The notes under the pieces are model-generated. The model searched no databases. It saw nothing but the letters and a program-made list of their open reading frames with translations, and was not told the DNA's origin. The position numbers were made by a program, and so were the translations under genes. A DNA stretch of 29,040 nucleotides from Macrostomum lignano (Eukaryota): assembly GCA_002269645.1 (NCBI GenBank), contig NIVC01004068.1, positions 1 to 29,040 on the forward strand, written 5' to 3'. The first letter of the stretch is position 1, and each line of letters opens with the position of its first letter. Positions 1 to 25,529 of this stretch are shown here, in pieces.

Positions 1-273
1 GTGAACTGAAGCAATCCCAGGATCGTGGGCTGAAAGAGTCTGTTGGAACTCTAGATCCGGCCAAGTCACTACACTATGTTGAAATGCTCGATCAAGCACA
101 CACATCACCCCCACTTGCACTGTCAACTGACCAAATATATTGAGTAGACAAGGCAAAACAGTGGCCACCATTTTCCGCGCGCAAGCGTAGACTTTACATA
201 AATAGTCATAAATATTTGTTACTACATCGACTATTCCTTTTTTCTATAATAGCTAAAACAAAGTCGAACTCAC

Positions 274-666
274 GCAAAGGTTTTCCGTAAGCCTCGAACT
301 CGCAGATCGTCAGCTGAGGCAGGTAACTTTTCACCATGATCTCATGTCCGTATCCGTCGCATTTCAGAGTCTTATAGGCGAATTGTGTCGAATCTTTGTA
401 CCGATTGCACACATTCTTATCGTCGATGATCACTTCGAAGTCTGTCAGTCTCTCCCTCAGCATGTCGCGGTTGTAGATTTTGACGTACATGAAGAGCATG
501 GGATTATCAGTCTTCGCCTTCCACCAGGTGTTTTGTTTGCCCGTGTGAGCGCAGTTTAATAGATACCCTATATCTGAATCCAGTTTGCCATCATAAGCCT
601 TGTTGCACATGTAATTTGTGTCATCCTGGTTCGAGCCCTGGCTGCAGCTGACGAATTTGAATTTTG
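274..666 (-). CDS. F-type (fucolectin/FTP) lectin domain exon, copy 1; internal phase 1-1 exon of 393 nt
   Basis: Translation KFKFVSCSQGS..CNKAYDG..CAHT..WWKA..VKIYNRDMLRERL..C..C..LTICEFEAYG matches the F-type lectin pattern (DG Ca site, His..Arg..Arg triad, C-terminal CE.E.YG). Minus-strand acceptor (..ctctccattcaatgcag) at 667 and GTGAGT donor at 273-268. An in-frame stop lies just upstream of the acceptor, so the ORF-track start and tail are artefacts. Confidence 0.85.
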
Positions 667-905
667 CTGCATTGAATGGAGAGTGGCAGTTGAAATTTCA
701 GATGTACACCGAAACACAAATATATTTACGGTATGAATAGCTGTTCGACGGACCAATCAGAAACTTTGTATGGGTGTGTATGTCTACTCGTATATGCTAA
801 AATAGCACGTTTACTGCGAATGGATAGTCACTGCTGCTAGTAAACACTATTAACAAGTTGAGCGGTTTTTTGGCAGTTAATCTCTAGTAAAACTGCATTT
901 TTCAG

Positions 906-1442
906 GGGGGTCTTTCTCGAAAGCAACTTACAATCGACCATAGACGTAAGTTGGGTAAGCTACACTTACGGGTTGCTCGAAGGGCTCGCAAGTTAGCTAT
1001 GCGTAAGATTGATCGCAACTTTACGAGTTCGTAACTTTGCGCAAAAGACTGTTTCTCGAAGCGTTCGTATGTCTATGGTCTTTCGTAAGGTTGATCTTGA
1101 TTCTTAACCCTACGACAGCTCGGTATCAGTCGTAAGACGCACTTAAGCACTAATCGCATAGTACGTGGTGAAGCTTTAGTCAAGCCAAGTCAAGTTAAAC
1201 TTTATCGAAGGTGAGTCTTTCTCGAAAGCAACTTACGATAGACTAAAGTAAAGATATTTGCAGATTTATGACCATAGACATGCAACTTTTCGTTTCAGAT
1301 ACGACTTACGAACAGCGTAAGCCACGCAAAGTCTAAGTGAGTTTTGAGAAAGCGTCTTACGAGCAAACTTACGCTACACGTAAATTTCTTTCTTACGATC
1401 TAACTTACCATAGAACTTACGTGAGTTTCGAGAAACACCCCC
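906..1442. mobile_element. PIF/Harbinger-type MITE (537 bp)
   Basis: 17-bp TIRs GGGGGT(C/G)TTTCTCGAAA with one mismatch, a 3-bp CAG TSD (903-905 and 1443-1445), many internal ACTTACG/CGTAAG motifs and no coding capacity. Confidence 0.85.
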
Positions 1443-2013
1443 CAGACCGAAATTTTTATGAAATGCTACCTAAGACTGGCAAGCAAGCAAAGTTCTTACG
1501 AAATTTCTGCCGCTCTAGTCTCCCTGGCTTATTTTTTCTGGAATGATTTTTGTGGAATTTTCTGGTCATTGTTAAAACCCTAATTTATCGCTATGCAGAA
1601 ATGCATTATACAGAAATCCATTTAAAAGAAACGACTGTCTTTGTCGGGGGTCGGTGCTGGTTTGAGGTGGTAGGCCTCACCCACCCACTGTGTTCTAAGG
1701 GCTACCTTGTGAACCGCTGGTGCCTATTTCGCTGCGGTTGATTAAATTCTTAATAATATATAATTTATAAAATAATAATATAATGTAACGATATATACAG
1801 ATTTTTTTCGGCAGCTAATTGCTGCCGTTAAAGAATCTGTCTATGTCGTTATTGTGCTTTTTTGAATGAAACTGATTATTAACGATAGATTTTATACCTT
1901 TCGGTAGTATATTCAGCGATGCAGGATGTTATTACAACTCTGGGACACATGTATTGTTATGTCTTCAGGTTACTTAAAGTCTTCAATATACTTAAGGCAT
2001 TAATTATTAGTGC

Positions 2014-2205
2014 TGATATCCTAGCAGACGTTTCCGCGGCTCCAAGGTTCTTAGTCTTGCTCTTATTTCTCTTTATTCCACATTCTCACAGCGGGATTTT
2101 AACCCAAGCCTGTTTTGCAGCTTCATTTAGTCCATAGATAAAACAAAACGCGTCAAACTGCATATGCAATTAAAATAATATCAATATTATAGTCGCGTCA
2201 TATCA
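2014..2205 (-). mobile_element. 3' LTR (192 bp) of a Ty3/Gypsy retrotransposon
   Basis: On the minus strand it begins TGATAT directly after a polypurine tract (AGAAAGAGGGA, 2216-2206) that follows the integrase stop. It ends ATATCA (6-bp terminal inverted repeat) and contains AATAAA (2077-2072). Confidence 0.75.
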
Positions 2206-2216
2206 TCCCTCTTTCT

Positions 2217-2800
2217 TCAAGATGATTGGTACCTGTCCAATGCTCTCCGGATCCGCACTGGGTACCTGGACTCCGAAGGTTGAATTGAACTTGGTTCTTC
2301 ATCGTCCTGGATAGGCTTGTGGGTTTCAGCCTCGGCTCTGTCTCTGACATGGTTCCGGTGCACCACCAGATCTCGTCCTCTATGGTCCTGTACTCGTCTC
2401 AGCTGTTCTCCAACCGCTTCTTGAAGTACTCCCTCCCTCCACTCCTTGTTGAAGGGATCTTGGACCCAAACAGGACTGTGAATTTGATCTGTTTTCTTGT
2501 GCTGGAACGACCGACGATGTAGCAGTGACAGTCTAGTATTAAACTGGCGCCCAAACATTTCTCGACACGGAGCGACACCGTTGGCTCTTGGGCAGACTCG
2601 AATGGCGTACAAAGTTTGTTGCATTCGAACTTCCGGGTCTGGATCGTTTAGCTGTTTTAGCTTGGTCTTCAGCCTTTTCACTGCTACCTCGACTACTCCA
2701 TTCGAAGCGGGAAGGTATCTGGGTGACTTGAGGTGTAGCACTCCCATTCGCTTCAACCAGGCTTCTGTTGAAGCTTGGAAACAGAAGCATTCAGTGTGAT
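2217..2800 (-). pseudogene. Ty3/Gypsy integrase C-terminal remnant, 5' truncated
   Basis: SPRYLPASNGVVEVAVKRLK (SPxYxPxSNG.xE motif), P..MFGR, VWVQ..W..G.L....G, VVHRNHVRDR and RYPVRIRR..DRY. The upstream DN(G/A) catalytic motif is not intact and a stop lies at ~2802-2804. Confidence 0.85.
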
Positions 2801-3946
2801 GTCATTCTCTTGCAGCCTTTCTTACAGAGGGGGTTGTGAGGGTTTGACTCTGACTATATATGAAAGTGTGTTTGGCAATCAGATCTCACTTCTGTTTTTC
2901 CGTCCCCGGTTTTGATTTTTGTCCCGGCTTTCCGGCCGCTTGCCATTGTTTTGGTTCGCGCTTTGAGGCGCTTGAGTTCATCACCCCCGGTCCATATTTT
3001 TGTCCCCTGCCGACCGCTTCAGTCTTGTAGCGTAACGTATACGGCAGATTCCTGTCTGAAGTCGTCGCTATCAAGCGCGGTTAGATAGAGACTGTCGGAT
3101 TTGACCAAGTACGTGGCCTCGACCCAGAGGGCCTCGATCAGTGTCACACTGAAGGGCAGTGCTGATAGAATTTAGTCAGTGCTCCGTTGAACGGTCAATT
3201 CGGCAGGGCTCTCGTTTGAGTGTAGGTTCTGGTTTAGGCCAGGGGTTAGGAGTCTTCTCCGTTGGTCGTGTTCGGTTTTTCTTCTTCAAGCTGAGATCTG
3301 CTTGCCATTGCGTAACTAAGTTATTATTAATCGTTTGTCTCGATATCATTTTCCGCTATTATCAGTTCGAAATTATCTGCGCCGCGAATTGCATTGAAGC
3401 TTGTAACTTGAAGTAATCAAATTAAATCGTCTAGCCAATTATCAGTCTGTATCATATAGGATTATCACTCTCTAAATCTATTCGGTTCGTGTTCATCGGC
3501 ATTCTTCCTTTTCTTGTACCGTACTGTGACTATTGGAGAAAGACTGGTAGGACTCGCCGACCGGCGATAGGCGATTAGCTTTAAAATCTCCGAACGCTCC
3601 AAGTAGGTTTGTCTAGGGCCTAAATAATTGCTTATCGTGCATGCAATATATATTCATATTGTATTCATCACATCGGCTAAATTTTCCCGGGTTTTTTTTC
3701 ACAGACTAGAATGTCGTCATTCTTACAGCATACTAAAACATACTACGCACTACACCTTTTTCCATTCTATTTTGGCAAACATCTAGAACATCAACATCTA
3801 GAACATACTACGCGCTAAAGTCTCTGTTTTCGTGCGGCCATTCAGCGGCAAATGGAATCCCCGTCCGTCGATCGCTAGGTAAACATCATTAGCGGAGAAT
3901 CATTCAAGCGTTGTAATGGAGCTCTTGTCGGAACTCATTTGTGACA

Positions 3947-6356
3947 CAAGGACAACTTAAGTAGTTACGTTATATATAGGACGCGACACTCAGCTTTCGT
4001 GGAAATTTTTTTGGAGGCCCGTAAGCCGTATAAAGTTCTACGTACATAAGCCTAGGATTCGACCGCTACATAGAGCACAGGACTGTGTGTGTTGTAATAA
4101 ACCATTCAGGTTTTCATTTCTTACTAAACTTGATAAGCTGACTTCACCTATTAATTAAAATAATTATATCACGTTCCTTAATGGCCAATAACAATATGCA
4201 TTTTTTAATTTGGATTTGTGAAATAGCTACTGGTTTTCTTGTTTTCTTTTTTGCTGACAAACATGGTTTCTTTATATCACAATTGTCAACAAGAGACCAT
4301 GTTTACAAAGCATTTTTTTATAGTTATTATAGCTCTAGGTTGCAAATACCATTGCATCTAAAATTAAATTTTGTTTTCTGAAAAATAACATATAGAACAT
4401 CATATTTGATATGAAAAAATGGTCTAGGAATCTTCCATCATGAAAGCTTGGCTTGTTTATAGTTGACTGGGTGTGTTCTCCTATTATATTCTAATATAAG
4501 TCAAGAAAATAGTGACAATTTTTCCAAAGTCACTTTTTGCCTTTTTGGGTTTCTCAAATTTTTACACTCTAGAAATTGACATTAAAATGGAAGCTTTTTT
4601 TCTATGTATTTCTATGTATTTCTATGTCATGTCTGTTAGGCCCATTGTAGTTGAAACTGAAATATTTCTATTAGTAAAAACCTTATTTATGTTAATGACT
4701 ACCCCTAGTAGTTAGAAAGTTTTAAAGCCATGTTTTTCATTAAATAGCTTGTTTATTAACTAACACTAGGAATTAATTTGAAACTTGTAATGTGCTAAAT
4801 AGTATAAACACTAATAGGCCTACAGCTATTATAAGTAAAACCTATAAGAAATCTTTGACCAATAACATTTCATTTATATAGGTTATTAAGTGATAAACAA
4901 GGTTCATAAACATATAAATGTGCAATTTAAAATACTTTTTTACTTTATATCATTCGAGAATGTCACCAAACACATGGGAAATGCAAAAAGCATTGGCCAA
5001 AGGATGCAAGGCTTACAAAAATCAAGCGATATTTTCAACCTATTGACCCACCATCTGTCTTTATGTGCCCACCTAGCTCACTCTATGCGGCAAACATTTG
5101 CAGGTACATTTTTGCCAAAGTTCTTTAAATAATGCTTTCAATATAAGTCAGCGCTGTCACTCAATTGCATTATTTCAGTGTCATCTAGAAATGTGACTGA
5201 ACGTTGTATTCTGGCGTCACATTGTCAACAAATGCCTGATGAACTACAGGACTTTAATACAAAGGATAGAATTGGAGGCTGGGAGAACTTTGCATCCGCT
5301 GTGGTAGACAAGCCAGCCTGGATGTCAAGTTGGTTGGTCCAACGCGAGGAGGGTTGCTTCGGAAACCCGCGAGCAGCTTGTTGCGATGGTGAGCTGTCGG
5401 ACGACGAACTTGCACATCTCAATGATCTAGTTTCGACTTCGAAAGACAGCGCTGAATCCTCCATACCCACTGATGAAGAACAGTTGGCACTGTACTATGT
5501 ATGCGGATATGTAGCTCGCAAGGAGCAGATCCCAGTTTCAGAAGACAGTGGCCAAGCTGATTCAAATTCTCCAATTCAGTTGCCCGCTGATTGTGAGTTC
5601 ACGCGTTTACTATCGAGAGGCAAGCTGCGCAAGCCTCCAGAGTGGCTCCTGGTTTTTGCCGCACTGTGCTACCGACTGTTCTCATCACTGCGACCGTGTT
5701 GCTCAACTCGATTGGCTCGGATGTTTGTGTTTGTTTTTGAATCAGCCATCACTTAAATTTTGACTAAACCTGTGGATTTTTGGAACAGTTTTGCTGCTCA
5801 GGGCTGCTCAGTTTTAGTGTTGAAAAAAAGCCAAATCTAGGTCAGGATCCAGATCCAGGTCCTGGTCCTTCGGGTAAATTTCTGCTTCGTCGCAGATGCT
5901 TTGTCGAGTTTGTTTTCCGTTTTGTCTCACTCTAACGCAGGCCACAAATTTATTAACTTTTTTGATACTCGTAATAAATAAACCAATGGCATTTGACAGT
6001 GATATTTTCTATAATACATAAACTGTTTTATTTTACACTTGCTTAATGAGATTATTAGTTTACAAACTAAAAACTCGTTTTCGCTATTGAGTATTGACTA
6101 GGAATTGTGACAGACTGACAAATTTCTAAAGAAAATTTGGCGTATTTTACACAAAATTGCACGAAATTGGGTTGTTTTCACTGTACTTAACTGTACGCTG
6201 CTTATAAATGTAGTCTACTATTTTATCACTGACATTTTAACGAAAAAAAAATTTCTGGACCTAACACCGAAAGAATCAGCTTTCTACGTGCAACTAGTCG
6301 AAAATTACATGTATGTTAAGACCAGGCCTCCAATAAAAATTACACGATACGCGAGT
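3947..6356 (+). mobile_element. THAP/P-element-like DNA transposon, internally deleted, right TIR truncated (copy A)
   Basis: Left end CAAGGACAAC fits the P superfamily CANRG terminus and is shared with the inverted copy at 10873, where flanks diverge. The left 3985-4019 and right 6325-6356 regions are imperfect inverted repeats (..TCGTG.AATTTTT.TTGGAGGCC). The element encodes THAP and P-transposase C-terminal motifs. Confidence 0.7.
4959..5756 (+). pseudogene. THAP-domain / P-type transposase deletion derivative lacking the catalytic core
   Basis: A frame not in the ORF track (~4959-5103) reads CKKHWPKDARLTKIKRYFQPIDPPSVF (THAP C-H-P-F). A possible intron at 5104-5188 joins it to ..MPDELQDFNTKDRI..EEQLALYYVCGYVARK..SRGKLRKP, resembling the P/THAP9 C-terminus. 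No DDE/RNase H core lies between them. Confidence 0.65.
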
Positions 6357-6387
6357 AGGACGCAACACTCGCGTATCGTGTAATTTT
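6336..6387. other. Perfect 21-bp inverted repeat with 10-nt loop at the element/duplication junction
   Basis: AAAATTACACGATACGCGAGT (6336-6356), loop AGGACGCAAC, ACTCGCGTATCGTGTAATTTT (6367-6387). Confidence 0.95.
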
Positions 6388-6588
6388 CGATCCGGCCAAG
6401 TCACGATCAAGCACACACATCACCCCCACTTGCACTGTCAACTGACCAAATATATTGAGTAGACAAGGCAAAACAGTGGCCACCATTTTCCGCGCGCAAG
6501 CGTAGACTTTACATAAATAGTCATAAATATTTGTTACTACATCGACTATTCCTTTTTTCTATAATAGCTAAAACAAAGTCGAACTCAC

Positions 6589-6981
6589 GCAAAGGTTTTC
6601 CGTAAGCCTCGAACTCGCAGATCGTCAGCTGAGGCAGGTAACTTTTCACCATGATCTCATGTCCGTATCCGTCGCATTTCAGAGTCTTATAGGCGAATTG
6701 TGTCGAATCTTTGTACCGATTGCACACATTCTTATCGTCGATGATCACTTCGAAGTCTGTCAGTCTCTCCCTCAGCATGTCGCGGTTGTAGATTTTGACG
6801 TACATGAAGAGCATGGGATTATCAGTCTTCGCCTTCCACCAGGTGTTTTGTTTGCCCGTGTGAGCGCAGTTTAATAGATACCCTATATCTGAATCCAGTT
6901 TGCCATCATAAGCCTTGTTGCACATGTAATTTGTGTCATCCTGGTTCGAGCCCTGGCTGCAGCTGACGAATTTGAATTTTG
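6589..6981 (-). CDS. F-type lectin domain exon, copy 2 (same protein as 274-666)
   Basis: Same translation and same acceptor (6982) and GTGAGT donor (6588) as copy 1. Confidence 0.8.
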
Positions 6982-7220
6982 CTGCATTGAATGGAGAGTG
7001 GCAGTTGAAATTTCAGATGTACACCGAAACACAAATATATTTACGGTATGAATAGCTGTTCGACGGACCAATCAGAAACTTTGTATGGGTGTGTATGTCT
7101 ACTCGTATATGCTAAAATAGCACGTTTACTGCGAATGGATAGTCACTGCTGCTAGTAAACACTATTAACAAGTTGAGCGGTTTTTTGGCAGTTAATCTCT
7201 AGTAAAACTGCATTTTTCAG

Positions 7221-7757
7221 GGGGGTCTTTCTCGAAAGCAACTTACAATCGACCATAGACGTAAGTTGGGTAAGCTACACTTACGGGTTGCTCGAAGGGC
7301 TCGCAAGTTAGCTATGCGTAAGATTGATCGCAACTTTACGAGTTCGTAACTTTGCGCAAAAGACTGTTTCTCGAAGCGTTCGTATGTCTATGGTCTTTCG
7401 TAAGGTTGATCTTGATTCTTAACCCTACGACAGCTCGGTATCAGTCGTAAGACGCACTTAAGCACTAATCGCATAGTACGTGGTGAAGCTTTAGTCAAGC
7501 CAAGTCAAGTTAAACTTTATCGAAGGTGAGTCTTTCTCGAAAGCAACTTACGATAGACTAAAGTAAAGATATTTGCAGATTTATGACCATAGACATGCAA
7601 CTTTTCGTTTCAGATACGACTTACGAACAGCGTAAGCCACGCAAAGTCTAAGTGAGTTTTGAGAAAGCGTCTTACGAGCAAACTTACGCTACACGTAAAT
7701 TTCTTTCTTACGATCTAACTTACCATAGAACTTACGTGAGTTTCGAGAAACACCCCC
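7221..7757. mobile_element. Harbinger-type MITE, duplicated copy
   Basis: Same TIRs and CAG TSD (7218-7220, 7758-7760) as 906-1442. Confidence 0.85.
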
Positions 7758-8328
7758 CAGACCGAAATTTTTATGAAATGCTACCTAAGACTGGCAAGCA
7801 AGCAAAGTTCTTACGAAATTTCTGCCGCTCTAGTCTCCCTGGCTTATTTTTTCTGGAATGATTTTTGTGGAATTTTCTGGTCATTGTTAAAACCCTAATT
7901 TATCGCTATGCAGAAATGCATTATACAGAAATCCATTTAAAAGAAACGACTGTCTTTGTCGGGGGTCGGTGCTGGTTTGAGGTGGTAGGCCTCACCCACC
8001 CACTGTGTTCTAAGGGCTACCTTGTGAACCGCTGGTGCCTATTTCGCTGCGGTTGATTAAATTCTTAATAATATATAATTTATAAAATAATAATATAATG
8101 TAACGATATATACAGATTTTTTTCGGCAGCTAATTGCTGCCGTTAAAGAATCTGTCTATGTCGTTATTGTGCTTTTTTGAATGAAACTGATTATTAACGA
8201 TAGATTTTATACCTTTCGGTAGTATATTCAGCGATGCAGGATGTTATTACAACTCTGGGACACATGTATTGTTATGTCTTCAGGTTACTTAAAGTCTTCA
8301 ATATACTTAAGGCATTAATTATTAGTGC

Positions 8329-9116
8329 TGATATCCTAGCAGACGTTTCCGCGGCTCCAAGGTTCTTAGTCTTGCTCTTATTTCTCTTTATTCCACATTC
8401 TCACAGCGGGATTTTAACCCAAGCCTGTTTTGCAGCTTCATTTAGTCCATAGATAAAACAAAACGCGTCAAACTGCATATGCAATTAAAATAATATCAAT
8501 ATTATAGTCGCGTCATATCATCCCTCTTTCCTTCAAGATGATTGGTACCTGTCCAATGCTCTCCGGATCCGCACTGGGTACCTGGACTCCGAAGGTTGAA
8601 TTGAACTTGGTTCTTCATCGTCCTGGATAGGCTTGTGGGTTTCAGCCTCGGCTCTGTCTCTGACATGGTTCCGGTGCACCACCAGATCTCGTCCTCTATG
8701 GTCCTGTACTCGTCTCAGCTGTTCTCCAACCGCTTCTTGAAGTACTCCCTCCCTCCACTCCTTGTTGAAGGGATCTTGGACCCAAACAGGACTGTGAATT
8801 TGATCTGTTTTCTTGTGCTGGAACGACCGACGATGTAGCAGTGACAGTCTAGTATTAAACTGGCGCCCAAACATTTCTCGACACGGAGCGACACCGTTGG
8901 CTCTTGGGCAGACTCGAATGGCGTACAAAGTTTGTTGCATTCGAACTTCCGGGTCTGGATCGTTTAGCTGTTTTAGCTTGGTCTTCAGCCTTTTCACTGC
9001 TACCTCGACTACTCCATTCGAAGCGGGAAGGTATCTGGGTGACTTGAGGTGTAGCACTCCCATTCGCTTCAACCAGGCTTCTGTTGAAGCTTGGAAACAG
9101 AAGCATTCAGTGTGAT
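8329..9116 (-). mobile_element. Duplicated Gypsy remnant (LTR 8329-8520, PPT, integrase 8533-~9116)
   Basis: Same sequence as 2014-2800 apart from a 1-nt insertion at the PPT edge. Confidence 0.82.
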
Positions 9117-9850
9117 GTCATTCTCTTGCAGCCTTTCTTACAGAGGGGGGTTGTGAGGGTTTGACTCTGACTATATATGAAAGTGTGTTTGGCAATCAGA
9201 TCTCACTTCTGTTTTTCCGTCCCCGGTTTTGATTTTTGTCCCGGCTTTCCGGCCGCTTGCCATTGTTTTGGTTCGCGCTTTGAGGCGCTTGAGTTCATCA
9301 CCCCCGGTCCATATTTTTGTCCCCTGCCCGACTGCTTCAGTCTTGTAGCGTAACGTATACGGCAGATTCCTGTCTGAAGTCGTCGCTATCAAGCGCGGTT
9401 AGATAGAGACTGTCGGATTTGACCAAGTACGTGGCCTCGACCCAGAGGGCCTCGATCAGTGTCACACTGAAGGGCAGTGCTGATAGAATTTAGTCAGTGC
9501 TCCGTTGAACGGTCAATTCGGCAGGGCTCTCGTTTGAGTGTAGGTTCTGGTTTAGGCCAGGGGTTAGGAGTCTTCTCCGTTGGTCGTGTTCGGTTTTTCT
9601 TCTTCAAGCTGAGATCTGCTTGCCATTGCGTAACTAAGTTATTATTAATCGTTTGTCTCGATATCATTTTCCGCTATTATCAGTTCGAAATTATCTGCGC
9701 CGCGAATTGCATTGAAGCTTGTAACTTGAAGTAATCAAATTAAATCGTCTAGCCAATTATCAGTCTGTATCATATAGGATTATCACTCTCTAAATCTATT
9801 CGGTTCGTGTTCATCTGCATTCTTCCTTTTCTTGTACCGTACTGTGACTA

Positions 9851-10873
9851 CACTCGCGTATCGTGTAATTTTTATTGGAGGCCTGGTCTTAACATACATG
9901 TAATTCTCGACTAGTTGCACGTAGAAAGCTAATTCTTTCGGCGTTAGGTCCAGAATTTTGTTTTTCGTTAAAATGTCAGTGATAAAATAGTAGACTACAT
10001 TTATAAGCAGCGTACAGTTAAGTACAGTGAAAACAACCCAATTTCGTGCAATTTTGTGTAAAATACGCCAAATTTTCTTTAGAAATTTGTCAGTCTGTCA
10101 CAATTCCTAGTCAATACTCAATAGCGAAAACGAGTTTTTAGTTTGTAAACTAATAATCTCATTAAGCAAGTGTAAAATAAAACAGTTTATGTATTAAAGA
10201 AAATATCACTGTCAAATGCCAAATCACTGTCGGCTTTTATTTTAATGTCAATTTCTAGAGTGTAAACCCAAAAAGGCAAAAAGTGACTTTGGAAAAATTG
10301 TCACTATTTTCTTGACTTATATTAGAATATAATAGGAGAACACACCCAGTCAACTATAAACAAGCCAAGCTTTCATGATGGAAGTTTCCTAGACCATTTT
10401 TTCATATCAAATATGATGTTCTATATGTTATTTTTCAGAAATTAAAATTTAATTTTAGATGCAATGGTATTTGCAACCTAGAGCTATAATAACTATAAAA
10501 AAATTGCTTTGTAAACATGGTCTCTTGTTGACAATTGTGATATAAAGAAACCATGTTTGTCAGCAAAAAAGAAAACAAGAAAACCAGTAGCTATTTCACA
10601 AATCCAAATTAAAAAATGCATATTGTTATTGGCCATTAAGGGAACGTGATATAATTATTTTAATTAATAGGTGAAGTCAGCTTATCAAGTTTAGTAAGAA
10701 ATGAAAACCTGAATGGTTTATTACAACACACACAGTCCTGTGCTCTAGCTATTTGTAGCGGTCGAATCCTTGGCTTATGTACGTAGAACTTTATACGGCT
10801 TACGGGCCTCCAAAAAATTTCCACGAAAGCTGAGTGTCGCGTCCTATATATAACGTAACTTCAGTTGTCCTTG
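9851..10873 (-). mobile_element. Inverted non-coding deletion derivative of the same P-like family (copy B)
   Basis: 9852-10221 is the reverse complement of ~5987-6356, and ~10232-10873 is the reverse complement of 3947-~4595. Several small indels and substitutions relative to copy A. Ends GTTGTCCTTG at 10873. Confidence 0.85.
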
Positions 10874-12001
10874 TTGTAACAGAGAAAAAAACTACTGCTT
10901 AGTAGTTTTTGTTGTTTTGTGTCGTTGTCATGTTTTGATTTTTTCTATAGCCAAATTCCTTTGTTAATTTTCCAGCAACAATCTAAAACAGCCAGCAAAC
11001 AATTGAAATGTTTCCGACAGGCTTACAGCCGAAAATCGTAGACAAAATGGTACAATTATTCTTATTATTGCTGAACACCGCTAACTCAGACAAATGTAGC
11101 TCTGACGGATGTGCTTCGCACCGTAAATGCGCTACGTGAGAAACTACTAGTACTTGAATTTCAGCGCAAGTGAACAAAGCAGAACTTCTTTAGCGTCTGA
11201 TAGCGTATTTTAAAAGAGTCGCTCCTGGTATTGGACTCGATTTGTAGCTTGTCAGCCATGTCTCAGCTTCCCGAGGTAGCAAGTCGACAGGATATTGACA
11301 GAAAACTGGCAAATCACTCTGATTGCAGAAATAAAAGCTGGAGACGACAGAATCAGAAGCTACCATCAAAAAGGAAAGAACACCCAACTGATCCTCAGCC
11401 TTTGCGGCGACATCAGGTAGCAGGCAAACCTGTGCTCAGATAATGCGGATGCTGTGCTGCAAGAGCCCACTGTAGAGGTCGGCAAAGTGCAACGAATCTG
11501 CGGATTGCATCAAATAGCCGAAGCAGCAATTCGCAGGAGTTACCCAGTCAGGTGACATTAAGCAGAGTTGAAAATGAATGAGGTTGCTGTTGATTCGCTA
11601 GCGTGTGGAGACTGGATCTATGCGAATGTTATGTTTCTTCTGAAGTTGCTAGATGACGAAGTCTAATAAGGAGTGGTCCAGATGTCCTGTTAGATGTCTC
11701 GGAGCTGCCTTACCACCTGCGCTACACAGTGCGGTGCGCATTGGCGAGCTGTTTGACCTCCGGTTCGACAGAGCTCGTGTCAAGAGGTTTGATCATGAGC
11801 GCAGATCTGATCGAAGACGGGTTGCCACGTACCTGATGGCGCAGATGCAACGGCCTGTCTCCAAAGTGCTGACGCAGAGGGATAAAAGTGCAGAGGCTAG
11901 CCGGTCACTGCTTTGACTAAAGTGCGGAATCTGTTTTAAATTCCCCATTCTTATTTAAAAATTTGCGGCTGTATTTAAGCATACCGGTAGATGCTTTGGA
12001 G

Positions 12002-12930
12002 CTCGATGACTTCACGCCTGCGAGAAAGAAGTTCATTCTGGATGACTTTGCTGAAGGTTTTCGCATAACGTTCAGTCAGCTTTGCTGAGGGCAGTTGAGG
12101 TCAGCAGCTACCAGCCGTCTTAAATGAACTATGACGTGGTTGAGTTGCATATTTTAAAAGAAATTTAACTGGATTGCGGCCGGACGCGCGGAAGGACGGA
12201 GTGACGGAGTGACGGACGGTGGCGGCGCGGATGATCTGCGCTCGTGGAGACTTGGAACAGTCGTGTGCACCCGATCCATGACTGTAGTTGCATTTAATCG
12301 ATTGCGCATGGGTGAATTCAAGATTGGAGAGCAAGGAGAATCTGCGGTTCTCGTGTGTCGAAAAATTTGCGCGGAAGCTGACAAAAGGCTGCTTCGAGAC
12401 CAAGGTTGACCTGAGCTAAGCATACGGCTCTTGTGGCGTGCATCCTGATTACTTTGTCAACACTGGCTTAAGTTCAAGTTTTGTGGTTCATTTAACGTGA
12501 TAATTAAATTCCCTATGGTGCGGCGGCTTCAGTCACTTGCTTTTATAATGCTGACTCATCTAATTTTGGCACGGATGTCATCTCTAGGCATTGAGTTCGA
12601 CATTGTGCAAGGAATCAAAGAGCTGCCCGGGGACAAAGCGAGGAAGCTAATTCAGCTGATTTTGGAGAAGCCGGTCAAGGTCAGTTTGAGTCAGTGGGTG
12701 CTCAAGCAGCTCATTGGTAAGCTTGAATGGGCGTTGCAAGTCATCACCTGCTGCAAAACCTTTCCTCATGAAGTAATTGAGCGATACGACACCTTACACA
12801 ATCGAATCTCAACAAAGCTCCCCGTGAGTTTTGAAATCTCAGCAGCTCTCACCGTGAGTCATAACAATTCCGCGTCAGAATGAAATGTTTGTGACGGAAT
12901 TGTACTCGTATGCCAGCTGGTTCTACATTG
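12002..12930 (+). pseudogene. Ngaro/DIRS (tyrosine-recombinase retrotransposon) RT-RNase H remnant
   Basis: Fragments across frames: FILDDFAEGFRI; GCFETKVDLS*AY..VHPD; KFKFCGSFNVIIKFPM; LGIEFDI..LPGDKARKLIQLI; LKQLIGKLEWALQV. These match the DIRS/Ngaro RT motif order. The YLDD region appears deleted. Confidence 0.7.
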
Positions 12931-13453
12931 AAATTTAGCGCAATTAGCGCCGCTAGTTTTGAAATGCGCTAACTAATTAATATATTTATTATAAACTGCC
13001 GTTTCACACGGATTTATGTGTTTTTGCACATTTTTGACTCACAAGTTTTAAATAAATAAGCTAATAATGCTATTGCTAATAATTTGTTTTTATTAGCAAT
13101 CCATTGTCACAGACATCAGTGTCAAACTGAGACTTGACAAGGCAAGTGCAAGTTGATAAATGAAATTAAAGTAATTAACAACTTTTTGGCAATGAACTAG
13201 AAGAAGTAAAAAAACCTTAAAAGTAGTGACAAAAAACAGGATTAATTGCTGATTACGAAAAGCGAAAAATGATATTAAAATTTCGTTTCACATTTCTAAG
13301 AAAATCTGAAACATTTACGTAATCGTTAACCTATTACTCAAACTAGGTTCTCATTTTCAGCCTTTGAACACAACTTTGTTATTTACCATATTTATATTTA
13401 CTATTTGCATGACTTCACCTCTTTAACAAAAAGTGAAACAAAGACGGACTCAC

Positions 13454-13849
13454 GTATCGGTTTTCCGAAAGCCTCGACCTCGCAGATCGTCAGCTGAGGC
13501 AGGCGACTTTTCACCATGATCTCCTGTCCGTATCCGACGCATGGCAGAGTCTTGTAGGCGAATTGCTCCGAATTCTTGTACCGATTGCACACCTTATTCT
13601 CATCGATGATAATCACTTCGAAGTCGGTCAGTCTCTCCCTCAGAGTCGCGCGGTTGAAGATGCGGACGCGCTGAAACCGGACGAAATGCTCGGATTTCGC
13701 CTTCCACCAGGTGTTTTCGTTGCCCGTGTGAGCGCAGTTTAATAGACCCCCTGTATCTGTATCCAGTTTGCCATTATAAGCCTTGTTGCACAAGTGATTT
13801 GTGCCATCCCAGTTCGAGCCCTGGCTGCAGCTGACGAACTTGAGTTTTT
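13454..13849 (-). CDS. F-type lectin domain exon, diverged paralog; phase 1-1, 396 nt
   Basis: About 73% amino-acid identity by hand count to 274-666, with a conserved acceptor (..catgcag at 13850) and GTGAGT donor (13453-13448). Confidence 0.85.
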
Positions 13850-14540
13850 CTGCATGGGTTGAGAGTGGCAGTTGAAATTTCAGATATTTTTTCTAGCGGC
13901 CGTTTTTTTCAGAAAAAAATTTCAGCAAATAATTTGACTCTTCCAGTTTGTTAGTTAAGATTCCCCAATATCGCAGCTTCTTAATAACTTTTTAATTCCA
14001 GGTGAAGCAAGTATGTCTTTTGTAAGTGCGTTCTTACGTTCGGTAAATTGTTTTTTTTCATGAAATACTACCTGATACCGGTGAGGATGCTAAGTTTTGG
14101 CAAAATTTCTGCTGCTTTTGCCTGTTTTGTGTACGCTCGCATTTCCAAGAAGAACTATTGTGGATTTCTCCGGTGACGGGAAGTCTTTGAGTGATTTTTA
14201 AGACTATTTGGTTCACCCGTAGAAGCCATCCTGCGCCTGTCACTCTGATTACAGTAGCGAACGGGATCACTCCTATAGCTTGAGGTAGCAATCTCGGACA
14301 TGGTACTTCAATACGCGTAGAATTCAAAAGTCAAGAATGTGATTTATTGTAAAGTTAGTGCTAAAGCATTAAAAACTGCCTAAGCCAGTTATGCATTTGC
14401 ACCAAAAACCGGCCTCTAGTAGGCCTGGCACGATTTGCAACTTTGGCGTCCACCGTTTACTGTAGTTTTTTATGATGAGACTATGCATAGGAGTAAGCGA
14501 GCAGAAATCAACAAATAGTAGGATGATATGATCTAAACCG

Positions 14541-14733
14541 CAACAACAACAAAAGCAACAACAACAACGACAACAACGGCAACAATAACAGCAGTAACAG
14601 CAACAGCAGCAACAACAACAATAACAGCAACGGCAGCAACAGCGACAACAGCAACAACAACAACAACAACAACAGCAACAATAACAACAATATCGGCAAC
14701 GGCTACAACAACGACAACAACGGCAACTACAAC
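14541..14733 (+). repeat. Degenerate (CAA/CAG/CAR)n trinucleotide tract
   Basis: About 64 triplets based on CAA with CAG, CGG, CGA and TAA variants. Confidence 0.95.
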
Positions 14734-14807
14734 TTCCCGCAGCTTTTCCCGCAGCGAGGTTTCTCCGCTGAAGGTTTTCCCGCCGAGCTTTTCTCGCGGC
14801 CGCCGCC

Positions 14808-15835
14808 TGGATGTCCAGGTTGCCGAACTCCAAGTTTCAAGAAATCAATCGTGCCAAAGAGAAGCACTCCGTCTCATCTCTGCTCTCCCAAAGTTGGAGG
14901 TGGTTTATCGCGAGTCTCTATGTATACCAGCAGTCAGCGTCGAAGCCAAGCGGAAAGCCCTCATCGCGGTGGAGAAGGCCCTTAGAAAGCCAACTGGCGA
15001 CCCATGGAGAGAGCTCTGCTAGCGCTGATCGGTACCGCAGCTCAAAGCCAACAAGGGCCCCCGAGAGCAAGCCCGCTCCGTGCTCAACCAACTCCTACCG
15101 ATGCGACGCCTACAAAATGCCTAGGTCCGTCCCTCTCCGTGGGAGTTCCTGACTAACTCAGATTGCTTGCACCTCTTCCCGGAGCTTCTCCGATGCTACC
15201 TGAAAGAAGCGGCTGCGAGTGACCTGCTACTTCGCTACTTTAATGACATCGAGCAAGTTGTGGTTTTCTCTGGTATGACGGCAGCAGAAAGGTGGTGCAG
15301 CTCATTTGAGACTGAGCTCCGGGCTCTCAGCCTTGCTCTCGAGGACATCATCAACACGTGCCCACCCACCGCTGCCACTATCACTGACAGTCAGTCTGCT
15401 ATTCGAGCACTCCAGGCTGACCGACCCACGACCAAATTTCTCCTCGAGCAACTCAGGGACCTCGTTCGGCTCGTGGATAGGGAAGCCAAGAAAGACGCCG
15501 ACCTGCCGCAACAACACGTTGCCGTTGACTGCCAGGAGATTTCTCCAGCGCTCCATAGCCTACAGGCCGCACCTCAAGGACGTCTATGCCAGTCCGATCA
15601 CCTTCACCGGCGACACACGCCACCAGCAGGTTCTTATCGCCCCCCTATGCCTACTACAAGAAGCGCATCGGCCTTTCGGACTCTGAAATCTGCCGTCGCT
15701 GCGGAGGCGAGGTTCTATCTGGTAGTGCTGGTGGTGCGACTCCTCGGTGCCCTTAACTGGGTCTCAGCCTAAGGAGTCGCCATCCGAAGTCAACAACGGC
15801 AACCACAACAACATTGACAACAACAACAACAATAA
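14808..15835 (+). mobile_element. 5'-truncated, decayed non-LTR retrotransposon with RNase H and CCHC knuckle (I/LOA/R1-group-like), with CAA tail
   Basis: RT thumb region (REALRLISALPK..ALIAVEKALRKP..DPW), RNase H (FETELRALSLAL..ITDSQSAIRAL), C-terminal AYYKKRIGLSDSEICRRCG..CP (15649 onward) and a (CAA)n tail at ~15791-15832. Stops, frameshifts and deletions are present. Confidence 0.8.
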
Positions 15836-17424: not shown

Positions 17425-17985
17425 CAAAAAGCGCGCGCAAGCGCAGATTTGCGTAGAGCAGCGAGACCGCGAGTGTCAGAAATCTCAGCTTCTCTTAGAA
17501 GCAGGTCGAAAAAACGCTGACTTCTCGCTGAACCAAGCCGCCGCGGCACTTAAAGGGATAGCAGCAGTACATCCTGCAGCGGCTCAGAGCATGCAGTACT
17601 GCTCTGCTCGGATGACGTGGCCAACAAGCTGTAGGCGCCGGATGCGCAGCAGCTGGCTGCATGGGTCGGCAGAGCTGGGCCCGACGGAATAGCTCGTCAT
17701 TGCTGGTGTTGGTGGTGGCGGTCGGCAATTAGTGGACACCGAAAGTGGCTCGCAGAAGTGCAGCCTGAGCGGCGTTGAGTTGCCGCGCTCCTGCGGGCCG
17801 GTCAGTGTCCACAATTCAGCATTGAAAAGAAGGACGCGGTTTCTATGACTGCCTGGAAAAGCCGCCCTCTCAGCCGATACGGCAGCCTGGGGCACTGCAG
17901 GACAGTCCGCACGGTGTGGAAGGCGCCCTAGGCAAGCGCCCTGCGCTGTGTCATGTCGTCTGTGATGCTTGGCCCTTGACAATTT
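17425..17985 (-). pseudogene. RTE-type LINE RT C-terminal remnant
   Basis: RRALA*GAFHTVRTVLQ..RLFQAVIET/VLLFNAELWTLT..LLRIRRLQLVGHVIRAEQYC; same family as 25530-26884. Confidence 0.8.
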
Positions 17986-20243: not shown

Positions 20244-20549
20244 TCAGTGCCATAGAAATGAAGACTTTTGCATAGGTGGATCTTTTAGCTGGTGAGCGGT
20301 TTTAGACTACAATTCCCTCCTAAGCTCTGGATCCCAAGGGTGGATTATAGGTACCACCATTTTATGTCTTTCCTCCTAGATGGATTCGATGCGGAAGGGG
20401 ATGTGGAAGTACAGGTCCCAGAGCTCTCTCGTCGTGCACATCTCACTGGGAGTTATCTAGAAGTATTCGGTTAAATTCGGCTCATACTCGGTGATCATCC
20501 ACTCTGTTCCTCAGCTTCCATTACATGCCCTGCGACAGGCGCACTCACT

Positions 20550-20775
20550 ACACCTTTTCACGTTCAATTTTGAACAAAGTCCAGTTCTAAAAAAACTAGC
20601 GGAAATTCAATTCAGACAATTCAGACTGGGGACAATTTTGTCTATGGCTAAACCTCGCTTCCGTAGCAGAATGTTTTGAACTGGGGTTTGTTGCCCCAGT
20701 CTGAATTGTCTGAATTGAATTTCCGCTAGTTTTTTTAGAACTGGACTTTGTTCAAAATTGAACGTGAAAAGGTGT
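20550..20775. mobile_element. Foldback MITE with perfect 82-83 bp TIRs
   Basis: 20549-20631 is the exact reverse complement of 20694-20776, with a 62-bp spacer. Flanked by the direct repeat ACTCACT (20543-20549, 20776-20782); alternatively a TA TSD with CAC..GTG ends. Confidence 0.85.
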
Positions 20776-21527
20776 ACTCACTTCATACCACGACTGATAG
20801 AATTGCTGGCCCTAAACTTGGTGGAATAAGTGGAATAGGTTACGACAGAGTATTAGATGGTGAGCAATGGTGGCGAGGAGACCAGGCTAATGCGACCCAA
20901 TGGGCAGCACAACAGAGGAAAAATACCTTAACAGACGCGGCCGACGGGCAGGTGGTTGTCGGATGGTCGCGGCGGCTGCAGTCTCGGATCGGGGTGTGTG
21001 TTAGGACAATTAGTGGATGCTAATTGGGAAGATCCTGAGGATCAGGAGCAATCAAGTATTGGGGCGCGAGAGAGTCGGTCCAACTCGAAATTTCACGTCG
21101 AAAGCATCTTCCTTTACTAAGTCGAAATTTTCCGATTGCAAAATTTCGATCTTGTGAAAGTGGCTGCTATGAACTTTCGATGTGAAATTTTGACCTTATG
21201 AAGTACCTTGCTAGAAGTTTCGAAGTTGTGAAATTTCGACCCTGTGAAAGCCAGAGAAAGTTGAGAAGAGTTTCCGATTCGGGTGCTGAGTTTCTGAGGG
21301 AAGGTTCGGTCTCGCGAGAAAACAGAACAACACAAGAGACCGAAGCCCAGAGAACAGCAAAACAAAGTAAAGGTAAATGATAAGGTAAAAGTTTCCGCTC
21401 ACGGCTCAAAACAGGCTCCTATTTTTAGCCCTGATATCACGCGTCACGCGATAACGTTAGCGTGATGCGTGACATTGAAGGACAGGCTGTGGCCCGTCCT
21501 TGGACCTCCGTTACCAAACAACCCTAA

Positions 21528-21627: not shown

Positions 21628-22005
21628 AAAAGCTTGGGGATAGAGGGGTCGTAATGCTGTCTAACTCGTGATTGATTTCGAACAACAGAAAGGAGTTAGG
21701 GGTTGGTGCGCGGGTAGTGGCGTATATTCCTGTATACGCGCTTGTATACGGTGTAATTCTTTTATAAGATCAGTTTTCCAATATTGGATGATTTACAAAA
21801 TTAAGCTTGTCGTTTCTAATCCTTCGATTGTAGCTTATCGACCGCAGACGCAGAAGCGAACTCAATCCTGACAGGGACGATCGCTGCGGCGGGTATAATA
21901 TGTTTTTCGTGAGACCGATGAATTGAAACAATATGATAAATTTATACCAGCTTAGCAGTGATAGTCGATAAAAAATTAAATAAACTGATTGAAAGAATGA
22001 CTTAC

Positions 22006-22188
22006 GTTTGTGTCCAGAAGTTCCTGTATTTTTTGGCCAAGCTCTATGTGATTTTGTATGATCAACTTTGTTCCTGTGAATAAGCTGCACTAGCACATTG
22101 GTGTCCGTGCAAAACTCAACAATCATCAGCAGTTCCAACAAGTCTGCCGAGTCGGCTACTAAGGTTTCGTTAAACCACGCGTTCGAGT
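22006..22188 (-). CDS. Candidate internal exon (183 nt, phase 1-1) of unknown product
   Basis: Acceptor gtcattttacag and donor GTAAGT bound an open frame SNAWFNETLVADSADLLELLMIVEFCTDTNVLVQLIHRNKVDHTKSHRAWPKNTGTSGHK. No domain recognised. Confidence 0.45.
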
Positions 22189-22532
22189 CTGTAAAATGAC
22201 TATTGACGTTCAGCTCTATGTTCAGACACTTGAACAGAACGTCGGAGTTCAGATAGTACCAATTTATAAGTACAAAAAGCTAACAGGAAAGTGTTTGGCC
22301 ACGGCCTTAGGCAGAAATTTGAGTTCCAGAGGTGAGTCGTGTTCATGCGCGTGGTTTACTAGTTTAGTAAGTGGTTTAGTAGTTATAGTTTACTATAACT
22401 ACTAAACTTCCAAGCCGAGTCACTTTCTTGTATTTGCTGCCAGAAAAATTCAGGACAATGCTTTATTTCTTGCGAGTCACGCATTGGCTTGAACTGAATT
22501 CCTTTGCTCGAGGTCTTTGATTCCTCGAAGAA

Positions 22533-23478
22533 TCAAGAGCTAGCCTGTCTATCGGCTTCGAGGTTGCCGAGCTTAAAATGCACCATGGCAACTAAGCACT
22601 GTCGGGCAGAGAAGGCACAATTCGGAATTCGTGAGGCGTCATTTAGGAATGACAGCAGCTTGTCACCAACACTGATCATCGCTGCACAATCTCAGCAATA
22701 GGCTGCGAATCGCGTCATACAGATCGTGGGACTGAAGGTTGCCCCAGTGGATTTCCAGTGCTATACTCGCCTTCATCACTGCATGACTGCATAAGGAACG
22801 GATAAAAATGGAAGTTTGCATCTTTTGTGATTGGTTGCAGTTGAGCCTTGAACTTTTGAACAATGTTCAGGATATCTTCGATACTTCATGAAGAACAGTC
22901 GCAATGCGTTGCTTCCCACTGTTCCTTTTTTGAGATATATATCCAAGCATTTCACAGGGAAAAATGCCTCATTAGCTTATTCTCGTCGCTTGACTCACGG
23001 ACTATAGCAATTGTAGAGCTTACACAATGCCAGCCTTGTCAGGTAAATCAAGTTTTGTGGCATCCAATCCTTAGATGGTGTTTCGTCCACCAGATAGAAC
23101 ACTATGCTCTTGGCGTGATAAGTTTTCAACCCTTTAACTTGCAGTGGAGAGATACTGGCTGTCGCACTCGCAAGTCCCATTGAAGTGAACTATGCGATTT
23201 CTGTCAATAAAGGTGATGTCGATTTCAGAGTCCTGCTCTGTCCGGCCGTCCAGTCGCACCAGACTGCTTGACCAGCCCTCGGGGAAGCTGCCAACGAAGT
23301 GATTGTCGTGCTCTGCGAACTCGCCGAAGTTTGCAGCCGTCGCCTCACTATGGACTGTGTGACTTCGGCGAGTGCGCTTTGCATTCTGGCTCTTTCTTGT
23401 TGGGTGAAGCCGGCTGAGTTTAATGCCGAGTGCAGATCACTGCTCAATGCGGCTTCATCGGTTGTGTCAATATGGTCT
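22533..23478 (-). pseudogene. Mab-21 / cGAS-like receptor (cGLR) nucleotidyltransferase region, frameshifted and internally deleted
   Basis: VGSFPEGWSSSLVRLDGRTEQDSEIDITF (GS..acidic-h-D signature, 23295-23218), then GLKTYHAKSIVFYLVDETPSKDWMPQNL, LMRHF and LQPITKDANFHFYPFL. These are Mab-21 N- and C-terminal motifs spread over several frames. Confidence 0.75.
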
Positions 23479-23915
23479 CTGATTCAATGGAAAGAGCACG
23501 GTACTGTATGTAATGAGTGTACATTCAAAACTCTTTTACAAAAAATGATTCGGAATCGACCGAGTATCTATATCAGATTGCTCACTAAGCATCTCTCGCA
23601 ATCGATCAACAGAAGGACTGTTTGCGCAATCTGGAAGCTGATTGACATTTGGGTCGAGTCACATCAGTTGAATCAGAGCAAAAATCATATATACACAAGA
23701 TGGGCCACTCATTAACCGCTTATGAGGCCATAAAAGCTATTGTAAAAAAATTGTGTTTCGCGACAGCGCGAAAATCAACTACTAAACTCAATTTCGTCAG
23801 TAGTGTCTGCAGTAAATTCATCATTCTTAGTTCAATTGAGTAGCTGTTTATCGAAAAAATGAGAATATAAGATCTACGAGCTATGAATCAAAGTACCGCA
23901 CTGACCATGCATACC

Positions 23916-24665
23916 ATTGCAGCAGGCGTTAAAAGCCAGCAGAATTTTTTACAACCGGGTCGCATTCTTCGCTAATCAGTGGTCGATGACAGCAGCTCTG
24001 CCCGCGCACGCAGCCGGGTGAAGCGCGCGCTGACTCTAGCTATGCATGACGGAGCTGTGCTTTCGGGTCGGTGCCAGCTAGCGTGAATTAGCTCAGCTAT
24101 ACAGACTGACGCGCCGCTGTAGGCAGCTGCATGAGGAGGCGTCGTCCCTCGATTATCTTGGAAATTCGGATCCGCCATTGCCATTCGAAAGCATGGCCTG
24201 GAGTAATCTGACGTCTCCACTCTGAGCCACCAGGTGCATTTGTGATGAAATCTTTTCTTTGAAGGTTGCTGTCTGCCCCAGATAAGATCATTAGTCTAAG
24301 AGACTTTGAGAGCCTTCTCAAATCCATTCTCAGCTGCGATGTGCAAGGCAGTAGCTCCAAAAGATCGTTTGATATTTGTATCGGCGCCGGTTTTAGTCAG
24401 CCATCTCTACTACAATAACTGAATGGTCATGCCAAGAGGCCAGATACAAGGGGAGTTTGTCCATCATCAGCCTGAGAATCCACACGCGCCATCCATTTGA
24501 TAAGCAGTCTAACGGCCTTCCTGACCACGCTCTGAAACGAAGTGAATCGCCGTGCGACCAAATGAATCCTTGGAATCAGGATCGGCGCCCAATTGAAGAA
24601 GCTCCTCTATTTTTTGCACCTTTCCATCAGTGGCTGCATCAGTGGCTGCGCAAATTAATTTCAAT
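23916..24665 (-). pseudogene. Ankyrin-repeat exon (~6-7 repeats), frameshifted; probable 5' part of the cGLR gene
   Basis: LLQLGADPDSKDSFGRTAIHF, VRLLIK..DDGQTPLYLASWHDH, GADTNIKRSFGATALHIAAENGF, GADSNLQ, ADPNFQDNRGTTPPHAAAYSG. Putative acceptor before 24665 and GTATGC donor after 23916. A 12-nt tandem duplication (GCAGCCACTGAT) is present. Confidence 0.85.
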
Positions 24666-24730
24666 CTACACAGAGCACCAGCACGAAGATAAGTTTACAT
24701 GAACGTGGTGCAGCGAAATACTAAACAGCG

Positions 24731-25463
24731 ACTGTTAACCAATTTTATTTTTGCAATTTACCATCTGAAATCTGCGTTTATATAAAAAATCAGCTTCACA
24801 GACCTTACTGTTGCTTTAGTGCAGGTCTCCAATCTTGCCTAGCGTGATGTTGAAACGTCAGTAACTGTACGATGTCGCATACAGGCTAAATAAATCTACC
24901 CCTAGAACTACGAAATACCCAACAACAACTGATAACCAATTTTATTTTTGCAATTTACCATCTGAAATCTGCGTTTATATAAAAAATCAGCTTCACAGAC
25001 CTTACTGTTGCTTTAGTGCAGGTCTCCAATCTTGCCTAGCGTGATGTTGAAACGTCAGTAACTGTACGATGTCGCATACAGGCTAAATAAATCTACCCCT
25101 AGAACTACGAAATACCCAACAACAACTGATAACCAGTTTTATTTTTGCAATTTACCATCTGAAATCTGCGTTTATATAAAAAATCAGCTTCACAGACCTT
25201 ACTGTTGCTTCAGTGCAGGTCTCCAATCTTGCCTAGCGTGATGTTGAAACGTCAGTAACTGTACGATGTCGCATACAGGCTAAATAAATCTACCCCTAGA
25301 ACTACGAAATACCCAACAACAACTGATAACCAATTTTATTTTTGCAATTTACCATCTGAAATCTGCGTTTATATAAAAAATCAGCTTCACAGACCTTACT
25401 GTTGCTTCAGTGCAGGTCTTAAATCTTGCATAGCGTGATGTTGAAACGTCAGAAATGTACGAT
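24731..25463. repeat. Tandem array of 197-bp unit, ~3.7 copies
   Basis: TAACCA anchor at 24736, 24933, 25130 and 25327; units almost identical. Confidence 0.97.
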
Positions 25464-25529
25464 TTCGTAACTAAGGGTTTGTAACTTTGAATTTGTAAAA
25501 TAACCAGCTTATACTCGTCGGTAATTATA

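Follow-up and report, generated by a model that had tools for sequence, protein, structure and literature searches.

A probable unprocessed pseudogene of the ankyrin-repeat/cGAS-like-receptor family in Macrostomum lignano

Results

A decayed gene on the minus strand

We analysed a stretch of 29,040 nucleotides from the flatworm Macrostomum lignano (assembly GCA_002269645.1, contig NIVC01004068.1, positions 1 to 29,040; this whole stretch is called the window below), in which a first-pass annotation had described a decayed gene, lying on one strand, that combines ankyrin repeats with the nucleotidyltransferase (NTase) of a cGAS-like receptor (cGLR), in short an ANK-cGLR gene. For the anatomy of the locus we used a purpose-written, frameshift-tolerant protein-to-DNA alignment. 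As had been proposed, it shows one decayed ANK-cGLR gene, which is collinear and heavily damaged and runs on the minus strand from 24664 to about 22000; this span (22000-24664, with the 3′ end placed to within about 50 bp) is collinear with full-length M. lignano ANK-cGLR proteins. The parts follow one another as seven ankyrin repeats, a linker, a 61-nt intron, the N-terminal part of the NTase, a gap of about 130 codons, a Mab-21_C-like lobe and a C-terminal domain of about 260 aa. Two points of the first description had to be revised. The gene runs about 530 bp beyond 22533, which had been given as its 3′ limit, and the two blocks said to lie about 440 bp apart belong to one continuous coding region, with the linker, which carries a 215-bp insertion, and the 61-nt intron between them.

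The alignment score was 745 at this locus. Reversed DNA, the opposite strand, further regions of the window and a shuffled protein scored 145-233, lower by a factor of 3 to 5, so that the homology of the locus is not due to chance. Identity was 65% over 388 aligned codons to a composite of two M. lignano proteins, P0002 and P0001 (collinear over 24628-23163), and about 40% to the full-length proteins P0006 and P0018, which are collinear with the locus from 24664 to about 22062-22075 and show a weaker likeness down to about 22000. PAA86972.1 could also be aligned collinearly by the frameshift-aware procedure. When 68 family proteins were compared with the window by tblastn, 22000-24664 was the only part that matched. 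The earlier remark that open reading frames (ORFs) show this gene in fragments only is borne out by a three-frame translation of 22300-24800, in which ankyrin-like and NTase-like peptides are scattered across all three frames.

Ankyrin repeats, linker and intron

The ankyrin block occupies 23980-24664 on the minus strand. A single frame of 22300-24800 gave Pfam matches to Ank_4 (E=2.4e-12), Ank_2 (E=2.7e-11) and Ank (E=4.7e-5), and the frameshift-aware alignment to the P0002+P0001 composite narrowed the earlier count of about six to seven repeats to seven, extending from 24664 to about 23980; their reading frame is broken about 10 times by frameshifts and once, at 24038, by an in-frame stop. 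The codon at 24664 that aligns with Met1 of P0006 reads TTG instead of ATG. A 12-nt in-frame tandem duplication (AATD-AATD) is found near the N-terminus at 24625-24649.

Alignment to P0002 delimits the linker (23540-23979, minus strand), which leads from the ankyrin repeats to the enzyme domain and which, in the paralogs, is coding throughout ('GQCETLVQLMRHSSTVNQLPDY...'). In the window copy it contains the 215-bp insertion, visible at 23669-23883 (minus strand) as a gap in the alignment to the P0002+P0001 composite. The insertion is bounded by a 10-bp direct repeat, CTTTGATTCA at 23893-23884 and CTCTGATTCA at 23678-23669, which looks like a target-site duplication. No further copy of it was detected by blastn in the window or in the intact-paralog locus L001, and its interpretation as an intron was rejected, as it is without usable GT/AG boundaries. 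The 61-nt GT...AG intron at 23479-23539 (minus strand) occupies the position of a conserved intron that, in intact paralogs, separates the ankyrin/linker exon from the NTase N-terminal exon. Once it is taken out, two reading frames fuse into an open 'IDTRSIPNHFLDHIDTTDEAALSSDLHS'; the intron stands 10 residues ahead of the 'LS' motif, as it does in P0065.

Remnants of the enzyme domain and of the C-terminal part

The remnant of the NTase N-terminal exon (23163-23478, minus strand) comprises the spine helix, the G-S and E-I-D motifs and an H...CEC motif, with one frameshift at about 23331. The NTase with GS..DSEID that had been recognised in the first pass can be read directly as 'FVGSFPEGW...DSEIDI', in the right order and spacing (G-S codons 23292-23287, E-I-D codons 23226-23218), and aligns with 'VVGSFSEGW...SDIDV' of the family. 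The window copy thus carries the core of a Pol-beta-type NTase, G-S together with a [D/E]-h-[D/E] metal-binding motif, and this part is 63% identical to P0001 (tblastn, E=1e-30).

The Mab-21 middle, already described as missing, has indeed been lost. At the deletion junction (23142-23162, minus strand), 'CEC(D)' (23163) is followed by 'VKGLKTYHAK' (23141), and comparison with P0018 (residues about 645-783), P0006 and PAA86972.1 shows that about 130 codons are gone, together with the second conserved intron of the family. The lost part includes the 'RPAVDxV' strand, which bears the third catalytic Asp, and the 'CHVVHAAPPG...LRVSTTFLE' segment. With the third catalytic acidic residue deleted, the window copy is to be regarded as catalytically dead, as judged from its sequence.

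Beyond the junction, the helical Mab-21_C-like lobe is preserved as a remnant at 22870-23141 on the minus strand ('VKGLKTYHAKSIVFYLVDETPSKDW...FFPVKCLDIYLKK...'), with several frameshifts and two in-frame stops. It is followed by the remnant of a family-specific C-terminal domain (22000-22869, minus strand), traced by alignment to P0006, P0018 and PAA86972.1, which likewise contains frameshifts and stops and in which the motifs 'NFHFYPFL', 'HDLYDAIRSLLLRL', 'ASRIPNCAFSARQCLVAM', 'DSAWKF', 'WYYLNSDVLFKCL' and 'LELLMIVEFCTDTNVLVQLIHR' are still recognisable. A 34-nt palindrome lies in this C-terminal part at 22374-22407.

Frameshifts had been reported for both the ankyrin and the enzyme part. 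We called about 14 frameshifts and one stop in the ankyrin, linker and NTase N-terminal part up to 23163 (against P0002+P0001), about 8 frameshifts and a stop in 23138-22586 (against PAA86972.1) and about 5 further frameshifts down to 22062 (against P0006/P0018). Because some of these calls may be alignment artefacts, we state the total as at least 20 frameshifts, which should be a safe figure for the window copy. Elsewhere in the window, duplicated units of 6.3 kb are 98-100% identical over the compared segments, with a start-to-start spacing of 6315 to 6318 bp. With units that are nearly identical and show so little drift in spacing, the assembly looks to be of good quality, and the indels at the pseudogene are unlikely to be sequencing noise.

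Intact paralogs in M. lignano

Word-indexed protein searches with the stitched enzyme part as query returned only P0001 and P0002, both of them fragmentary M. lignano proteins, whose ankyrin repeats, linker and 'FVGSFPEGWSSSLVRLDGRT...SDIDV' all lie in the same frame. A profile of the NTase N-terminal part, made from exact pieces of P0001, P0002 and the window, was searched against 1.84 billion representative proteins and gave 61 matches at E<=0.001. Twenty of the 61 were looked up; 17 carry the name of M. lignano, one is an unnamed MetaClust entry and two are repeat-protein artefacts. The latter, P0003 (a Methanimicrococcus InlB B-repeat protein) and P0058 (a sugar lactone lactonase), are multi-repeat proteins with 19 and 5 short matching stretches and were rejected as homologs. 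The relatives, nearly all from M. lignano, form about 59 clusters at 50% identity. The profile matches speak for a large, expanded family, and four intact paralog loci that we found in GCA_002269645.1 (L001-L004) agree with the first-pass view that intact members exist elsewhere.

The gene models of these four loci have three or four exons. Each unites, in one gene, one or more ankyrin/linker exons, an NTase N-terminal exon of about 103-122 aa and a large 3′ exon; the joining of ankyrin and NTase exons, proposed earlier as a check, is thus seen at the level of annotated gene models. A comparison of intron positions in P0018, P0065, P0063 and P0070 revealed two conserved introns. The first lies a short way upstream of the 'LS..LH.AL' helix, and the second follows 'Y.NGH...G'. 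The 61-nt intron of the window corresponds to the first of these positions, and the second falls inside the deletion.

The M. lignano ANK-cGLR paralogs PAA61028.1 (P0018), PAA87500.1 (P0065), PAA55030.1 (P0063) and UniProt A0A1I8FWU9 (P0006), with the fragments P0001 and P0002, have in common with the window copy the order of ankyrin repeats, linker, NTase, Mab-21_C lobe and C-terminal domain, the motifs VGSxxEGW...LDGRT..SDIDV, LKTYHAK, DSAWKF and YVNFDAL, and the position of the first intron. Unlike these paralogs, the window copy appears dead, with its frameshifts, stops, 215-bp insertion and deletion and without an ATG. Across the family alignment hardly any variation is seen at the active site (G 65/65, S 64/65, D 65/65, D 64/65), and the third D, at position 121 of P0012 in 'RPAVDxV', is present in 50/54 sequences. 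An H-x4-C-x-C...G-H motif directly after the D-x-D strand is also nearly invariant (65/66, 65/66, 59/60; P0012 positions 76, 81, 83 and 96-97). The window copy retains its H-x4-C-x-C part as H...CEC (23190-23163). This motif may bind a metal and could be a zinc site.

Several relatives are named 'Mab-21 domain-containing' or 'Mab-21-like HhH/H2TH-like domain-containing' in UniProt. Mab-21_C exceeds the Pfam cut-off in P0004 (26.2 bits) and P0014 (27.1 bits) and reaches 21-22.5 bits in four others, and the G-S...D-x-D stretch of family members gives weak matches to MTPAP-like_central and NTP_transf_2.

Predicted fold and relation to known cGLRs

For the intact paralog P0012, AlphaFold modelling based on a 66-sequence family alignment reached a predicted local distance difference test (pLDDT) value of 86.6 and a predicted template modelling (pTM) score of 0.88. 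In a Foldseek search of the PDB, all 42 matches of the model at E<=0.001 were cGAS, Cv-cGLR1, Sp-cGLR1, MAB21L1, MB21D2 or a bacterial CD-NTase. The best was 4k97_A (E=6.7e-9), and target-normalised TM-scores were 0.54-0.56. A bilobal cGAS-like fold is thus predicted with confidence for the paralog P0012, as distinct from the window copy. The C-terminal domain of P0012 (residues 325-590, about 260 aa) folds confidently on its own (pLDDT 86.4); it matched no Pfam family and no fold in the PDB (best Foldseek E=0.5).

The family is a known clade of predicted cGLRs, as far as sequences and models tell. Table S3 of Li et al. 2023 (PMC9980059), a list of 140 cloned cGLRs, includes in rows 89-93 five M. 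lignano proteins that share the motifs of the family. Table S2 of that study contains PAA-prefixed accessions with Ank_2 domains, and its authors report that in most flatworms Mab21-like proteins are the only ones of this kind. Fusions of ankyrin repeats and cGLRs also occur among the cGLRs of that study, for example in Stylophora pistillata, and the structures of Cv-cGLR1 (8gjw) and Sp-cGLR1 (8gjy) have been solved. Like metazoan cGLRs, the intact flatworm paralog has a predicted bilobal fold and the G-S/D-x-D/D active-site residues. Unlike the solved cGAS and cGLR structures, to which its sequence identity is 13-16%, the flatworm family has no PF03281 match, and it differs from known cGLRs in its extra C-terminal domain. 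MAB21L1, MB21D2 and MiD49-MiD51, members of the Mab-21 superfamily without proven cyclase activity, have the fold class in common with the P0012 model (E=2e-5 to 5e-3) and rank below cGAS and cGLRs among its fold matches. What sets the flatworm family apart from these proteins is its complete catalytic triad, together with the ankyrin and C-terminal appendages.

Lectin array and other features of the window

The neighbouring lectin exons had been taken to indicate a mixed innate-receptor cluster. The lectins themselves are real. A unit of about 6.3-6.9 kb occurs three times in 1-13900 of the window, each time with an ORF of 130-134 aa for an F-type (fucose-binding) lectin domain. The ORFs at 206-610 and 6521-6925 are identical, and that at 13401-13793 is about 85% identical to them in DNA; they match FBP32 (PDB 3cqo, E=1.5e-9) and, in Pfam, only weakly F5_F8_type_C_2. 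The cluster found no support. The lectin ORFs end more than 8 kb from the pseudogene, within a separate repeat array, and neither an F-type lectin nor another cGLR was detected by tblastn up to 10 kb away from any of the four intact paralogs. A cGLR-lectin cluster was rejected, as these four loci have unrelated neighbours, annotated as a kinase, VWA, ribosomal S30, Tim10, ADH, an M28 peptidase and a CH-domain gene.

Within the lectin array, large inverted duplications (4004-4552 versus 10264-10820 and 5987-6356 versus 9852-10221) are 95-100% complementary, which suggests a rearranged or palindromic segment. Identical 179-aa ORFs in the duplicated unit (2217-2756 and 8533-9072) resemble, by eye, the C-terminus of a retroelement integrase and had no Pfam match at E<=0.01. 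The larger ORFs flanking the pseudogene also had no Pfam match, and a retroelement origin of those at 15167-15772 and 17584-17982 is an impression gained by eye. Directly upstream of the pseudogene, adjoining its 5′ end, a 197-bp tandem repeat extends over 24714-25467 (3.8 copies, 97% match). Further features of the window are a perfect inverted repeat whose 83-nt arms stand 62 nt apart (20549-20631 and 20694-20776), possibly a hairpin or an element like a miniature inverted-repeat transposable element (MITE), and a CAA/CAG-rich tract with 9-nt periodicity (14522-14748), where a poly-Cys ORF lies on the minus strand (14369-14833). No Rfam family and no tRNA was found in the window.

Discussion

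Our analysis indicates, with a probability of about 0.9, that the region is an unprocessed pseudogene, derived by DNA duplication, of the M. lignano ankyrin-repeat/cGAS-like-receptor family. The protein encoded by the ancestral gene would have begun with seven ankyrin repeats, a putative module for interaction with proteins or ligands. These would have been followed by a cGAS/Mab-21-fold NTase with a G-S, D-x-D, D active site, which by homology might synthesise a nucleotide second messenger on activation, and by the C-terminal domain of about 260 aa. Such a protein could presumably no longer be made from the window copy, with its TTG start, frameshifts, stops, insertion and deletion, the last of which would take away half of the central sheet along with the third catalytic Asp. 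The copy itself probably arose by genomic duplication and not by retroposition, as the retained conserved intron points to a DNA-level duplicate rather than a retrocopy.

Several observations weigh against this interpretation. PF03281, the Mab-21 NTase profile whose search had been proposed as a check, had no match in the window or in intact family members: none at E<=10 for the stitched window sequence, P0001 and P0002, and none at E<=1 in seven longer family members. Mab-21_C (PF20266) reached E=0.28 in a single frame of the window and E=0.026 in the stitched sequence, where its 15.1 bits compare with a cut-off of 24.1 bits, and phmmer returned no match of the stitched NTase parts to PDB sequences even at E<=10. 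As a PF03281 profile match is lacking, the locus was assigned to the family through its paralogs, the literature and a predicted structure. In their main text, Li et al. 2023 (PMC9980059) do not name any M. lignano cGLR as active. Moreover, the frameshift count leans on relatives that are 40-65% identical, where poorly conserved stretches may give alignment artefacts, and neither the parental gene nor the nearest intact one was recovered, P0001 and P0002 being fragments. Finally, the status as a pseudogene was judged from the assembly sequence.

M. lignano assemblies are based on long reads, and the ANK-cGLR gene at this locus could in principle be functional and its apparent frameshifts indel errors introduced in assembly, the more so as most disruptions are shifts of 1-2 nt. 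We consider this highly improbable: the damage also includes the deletion of a catalytic strand within about 130 codons, an insertion with direct repeats, stops and a lost ATG, and the 6.3-kb units, 98-100% identical and with hardly any indel drift, speak against one error per 100 bp. Hardly more credible is a processed pseudogene that was retrotransposed from an mRNA. Such a copy would fit the contiguity of the ankyrin, linker and enzyme parts and the position of the gene among repeats, yet the 61-nt GT-AG intron is kept at its conserved position and its removal restores the frame. Nor was a poly(A) tail seen at the 3′ end; the other intron site, inside the deletion, is uninformative on this question. 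A new use of the relic, for example as a non-coding transcript or as a source of small RNAs that regulate intact paralogs, is likewise very unlikely, since the window contains neither an Rfam family nor a tRNA, no conserved element stands out beyond the decayed coding homology, and the pattern of decay looks neutral.

The remaining alternative concerns the family as a whole. Its members, and with them the relic, might be non-enzymatic Mab-21-like scaffolds, comparable to MAB21L1 or MiD49/51, instead of signalling cGLRs. MAB21L1 and MiD51 are among the fold matches of the P0012 model, no activity has been reported for the five M. lignano proteins cloned by Li et al. (PMC9980059), and most flatworms have only Mab21-like proteins according to these authors. 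On the other hand, the G-S/D-x-D/D residues are almost invariant in more than 50 divergent paralogs, and Li et al. (PMC9980059) class the M. lignano proteins as predicted cGLRs, so that we regard a scaffold family as unlikely. By analogy with cGLRs of other animals, we infer that intact members are enzymatically active and have an immune role.

The locus is best seen as an ordinary duplicated-gene pseudogene of an already catalogued family. For annotation, the locus is better labelled an ANK-cGLR pseudogene, at about 22000-24664 on the minus strand, than left as scattered ORF fragments; no function is expected of the pseudogene itself. The relic is ordinary and the family is moderately interesting. 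The flatworm phylum is said to have mostly lost cGLRs, as against the dozens of ANK-cGLR genes in M. lignano. It is tempting to go further and to propose that M. lignano has dozens of catalytically intact ANK-cGLR genes, that their C-terminal domain serves cGLR signalling as a new module, regulatory or effector, and that the pseudogene reflects rapid turnover of lineage-specific immune receptors, a proposal that we advance tentatively and with considerable doubt. Features of the family that merit separate study are the intact triad in more than 50 paralogs, the H-x4-C-x-C motif and the unclassified C-terminal domain. Overall, the relic provides one data point of gene death within a large Macrostomum-specific expansion of cGAS-like receptors, and this gene death is consistent with the birth-and-death evolution that is typical of immune receptor families.

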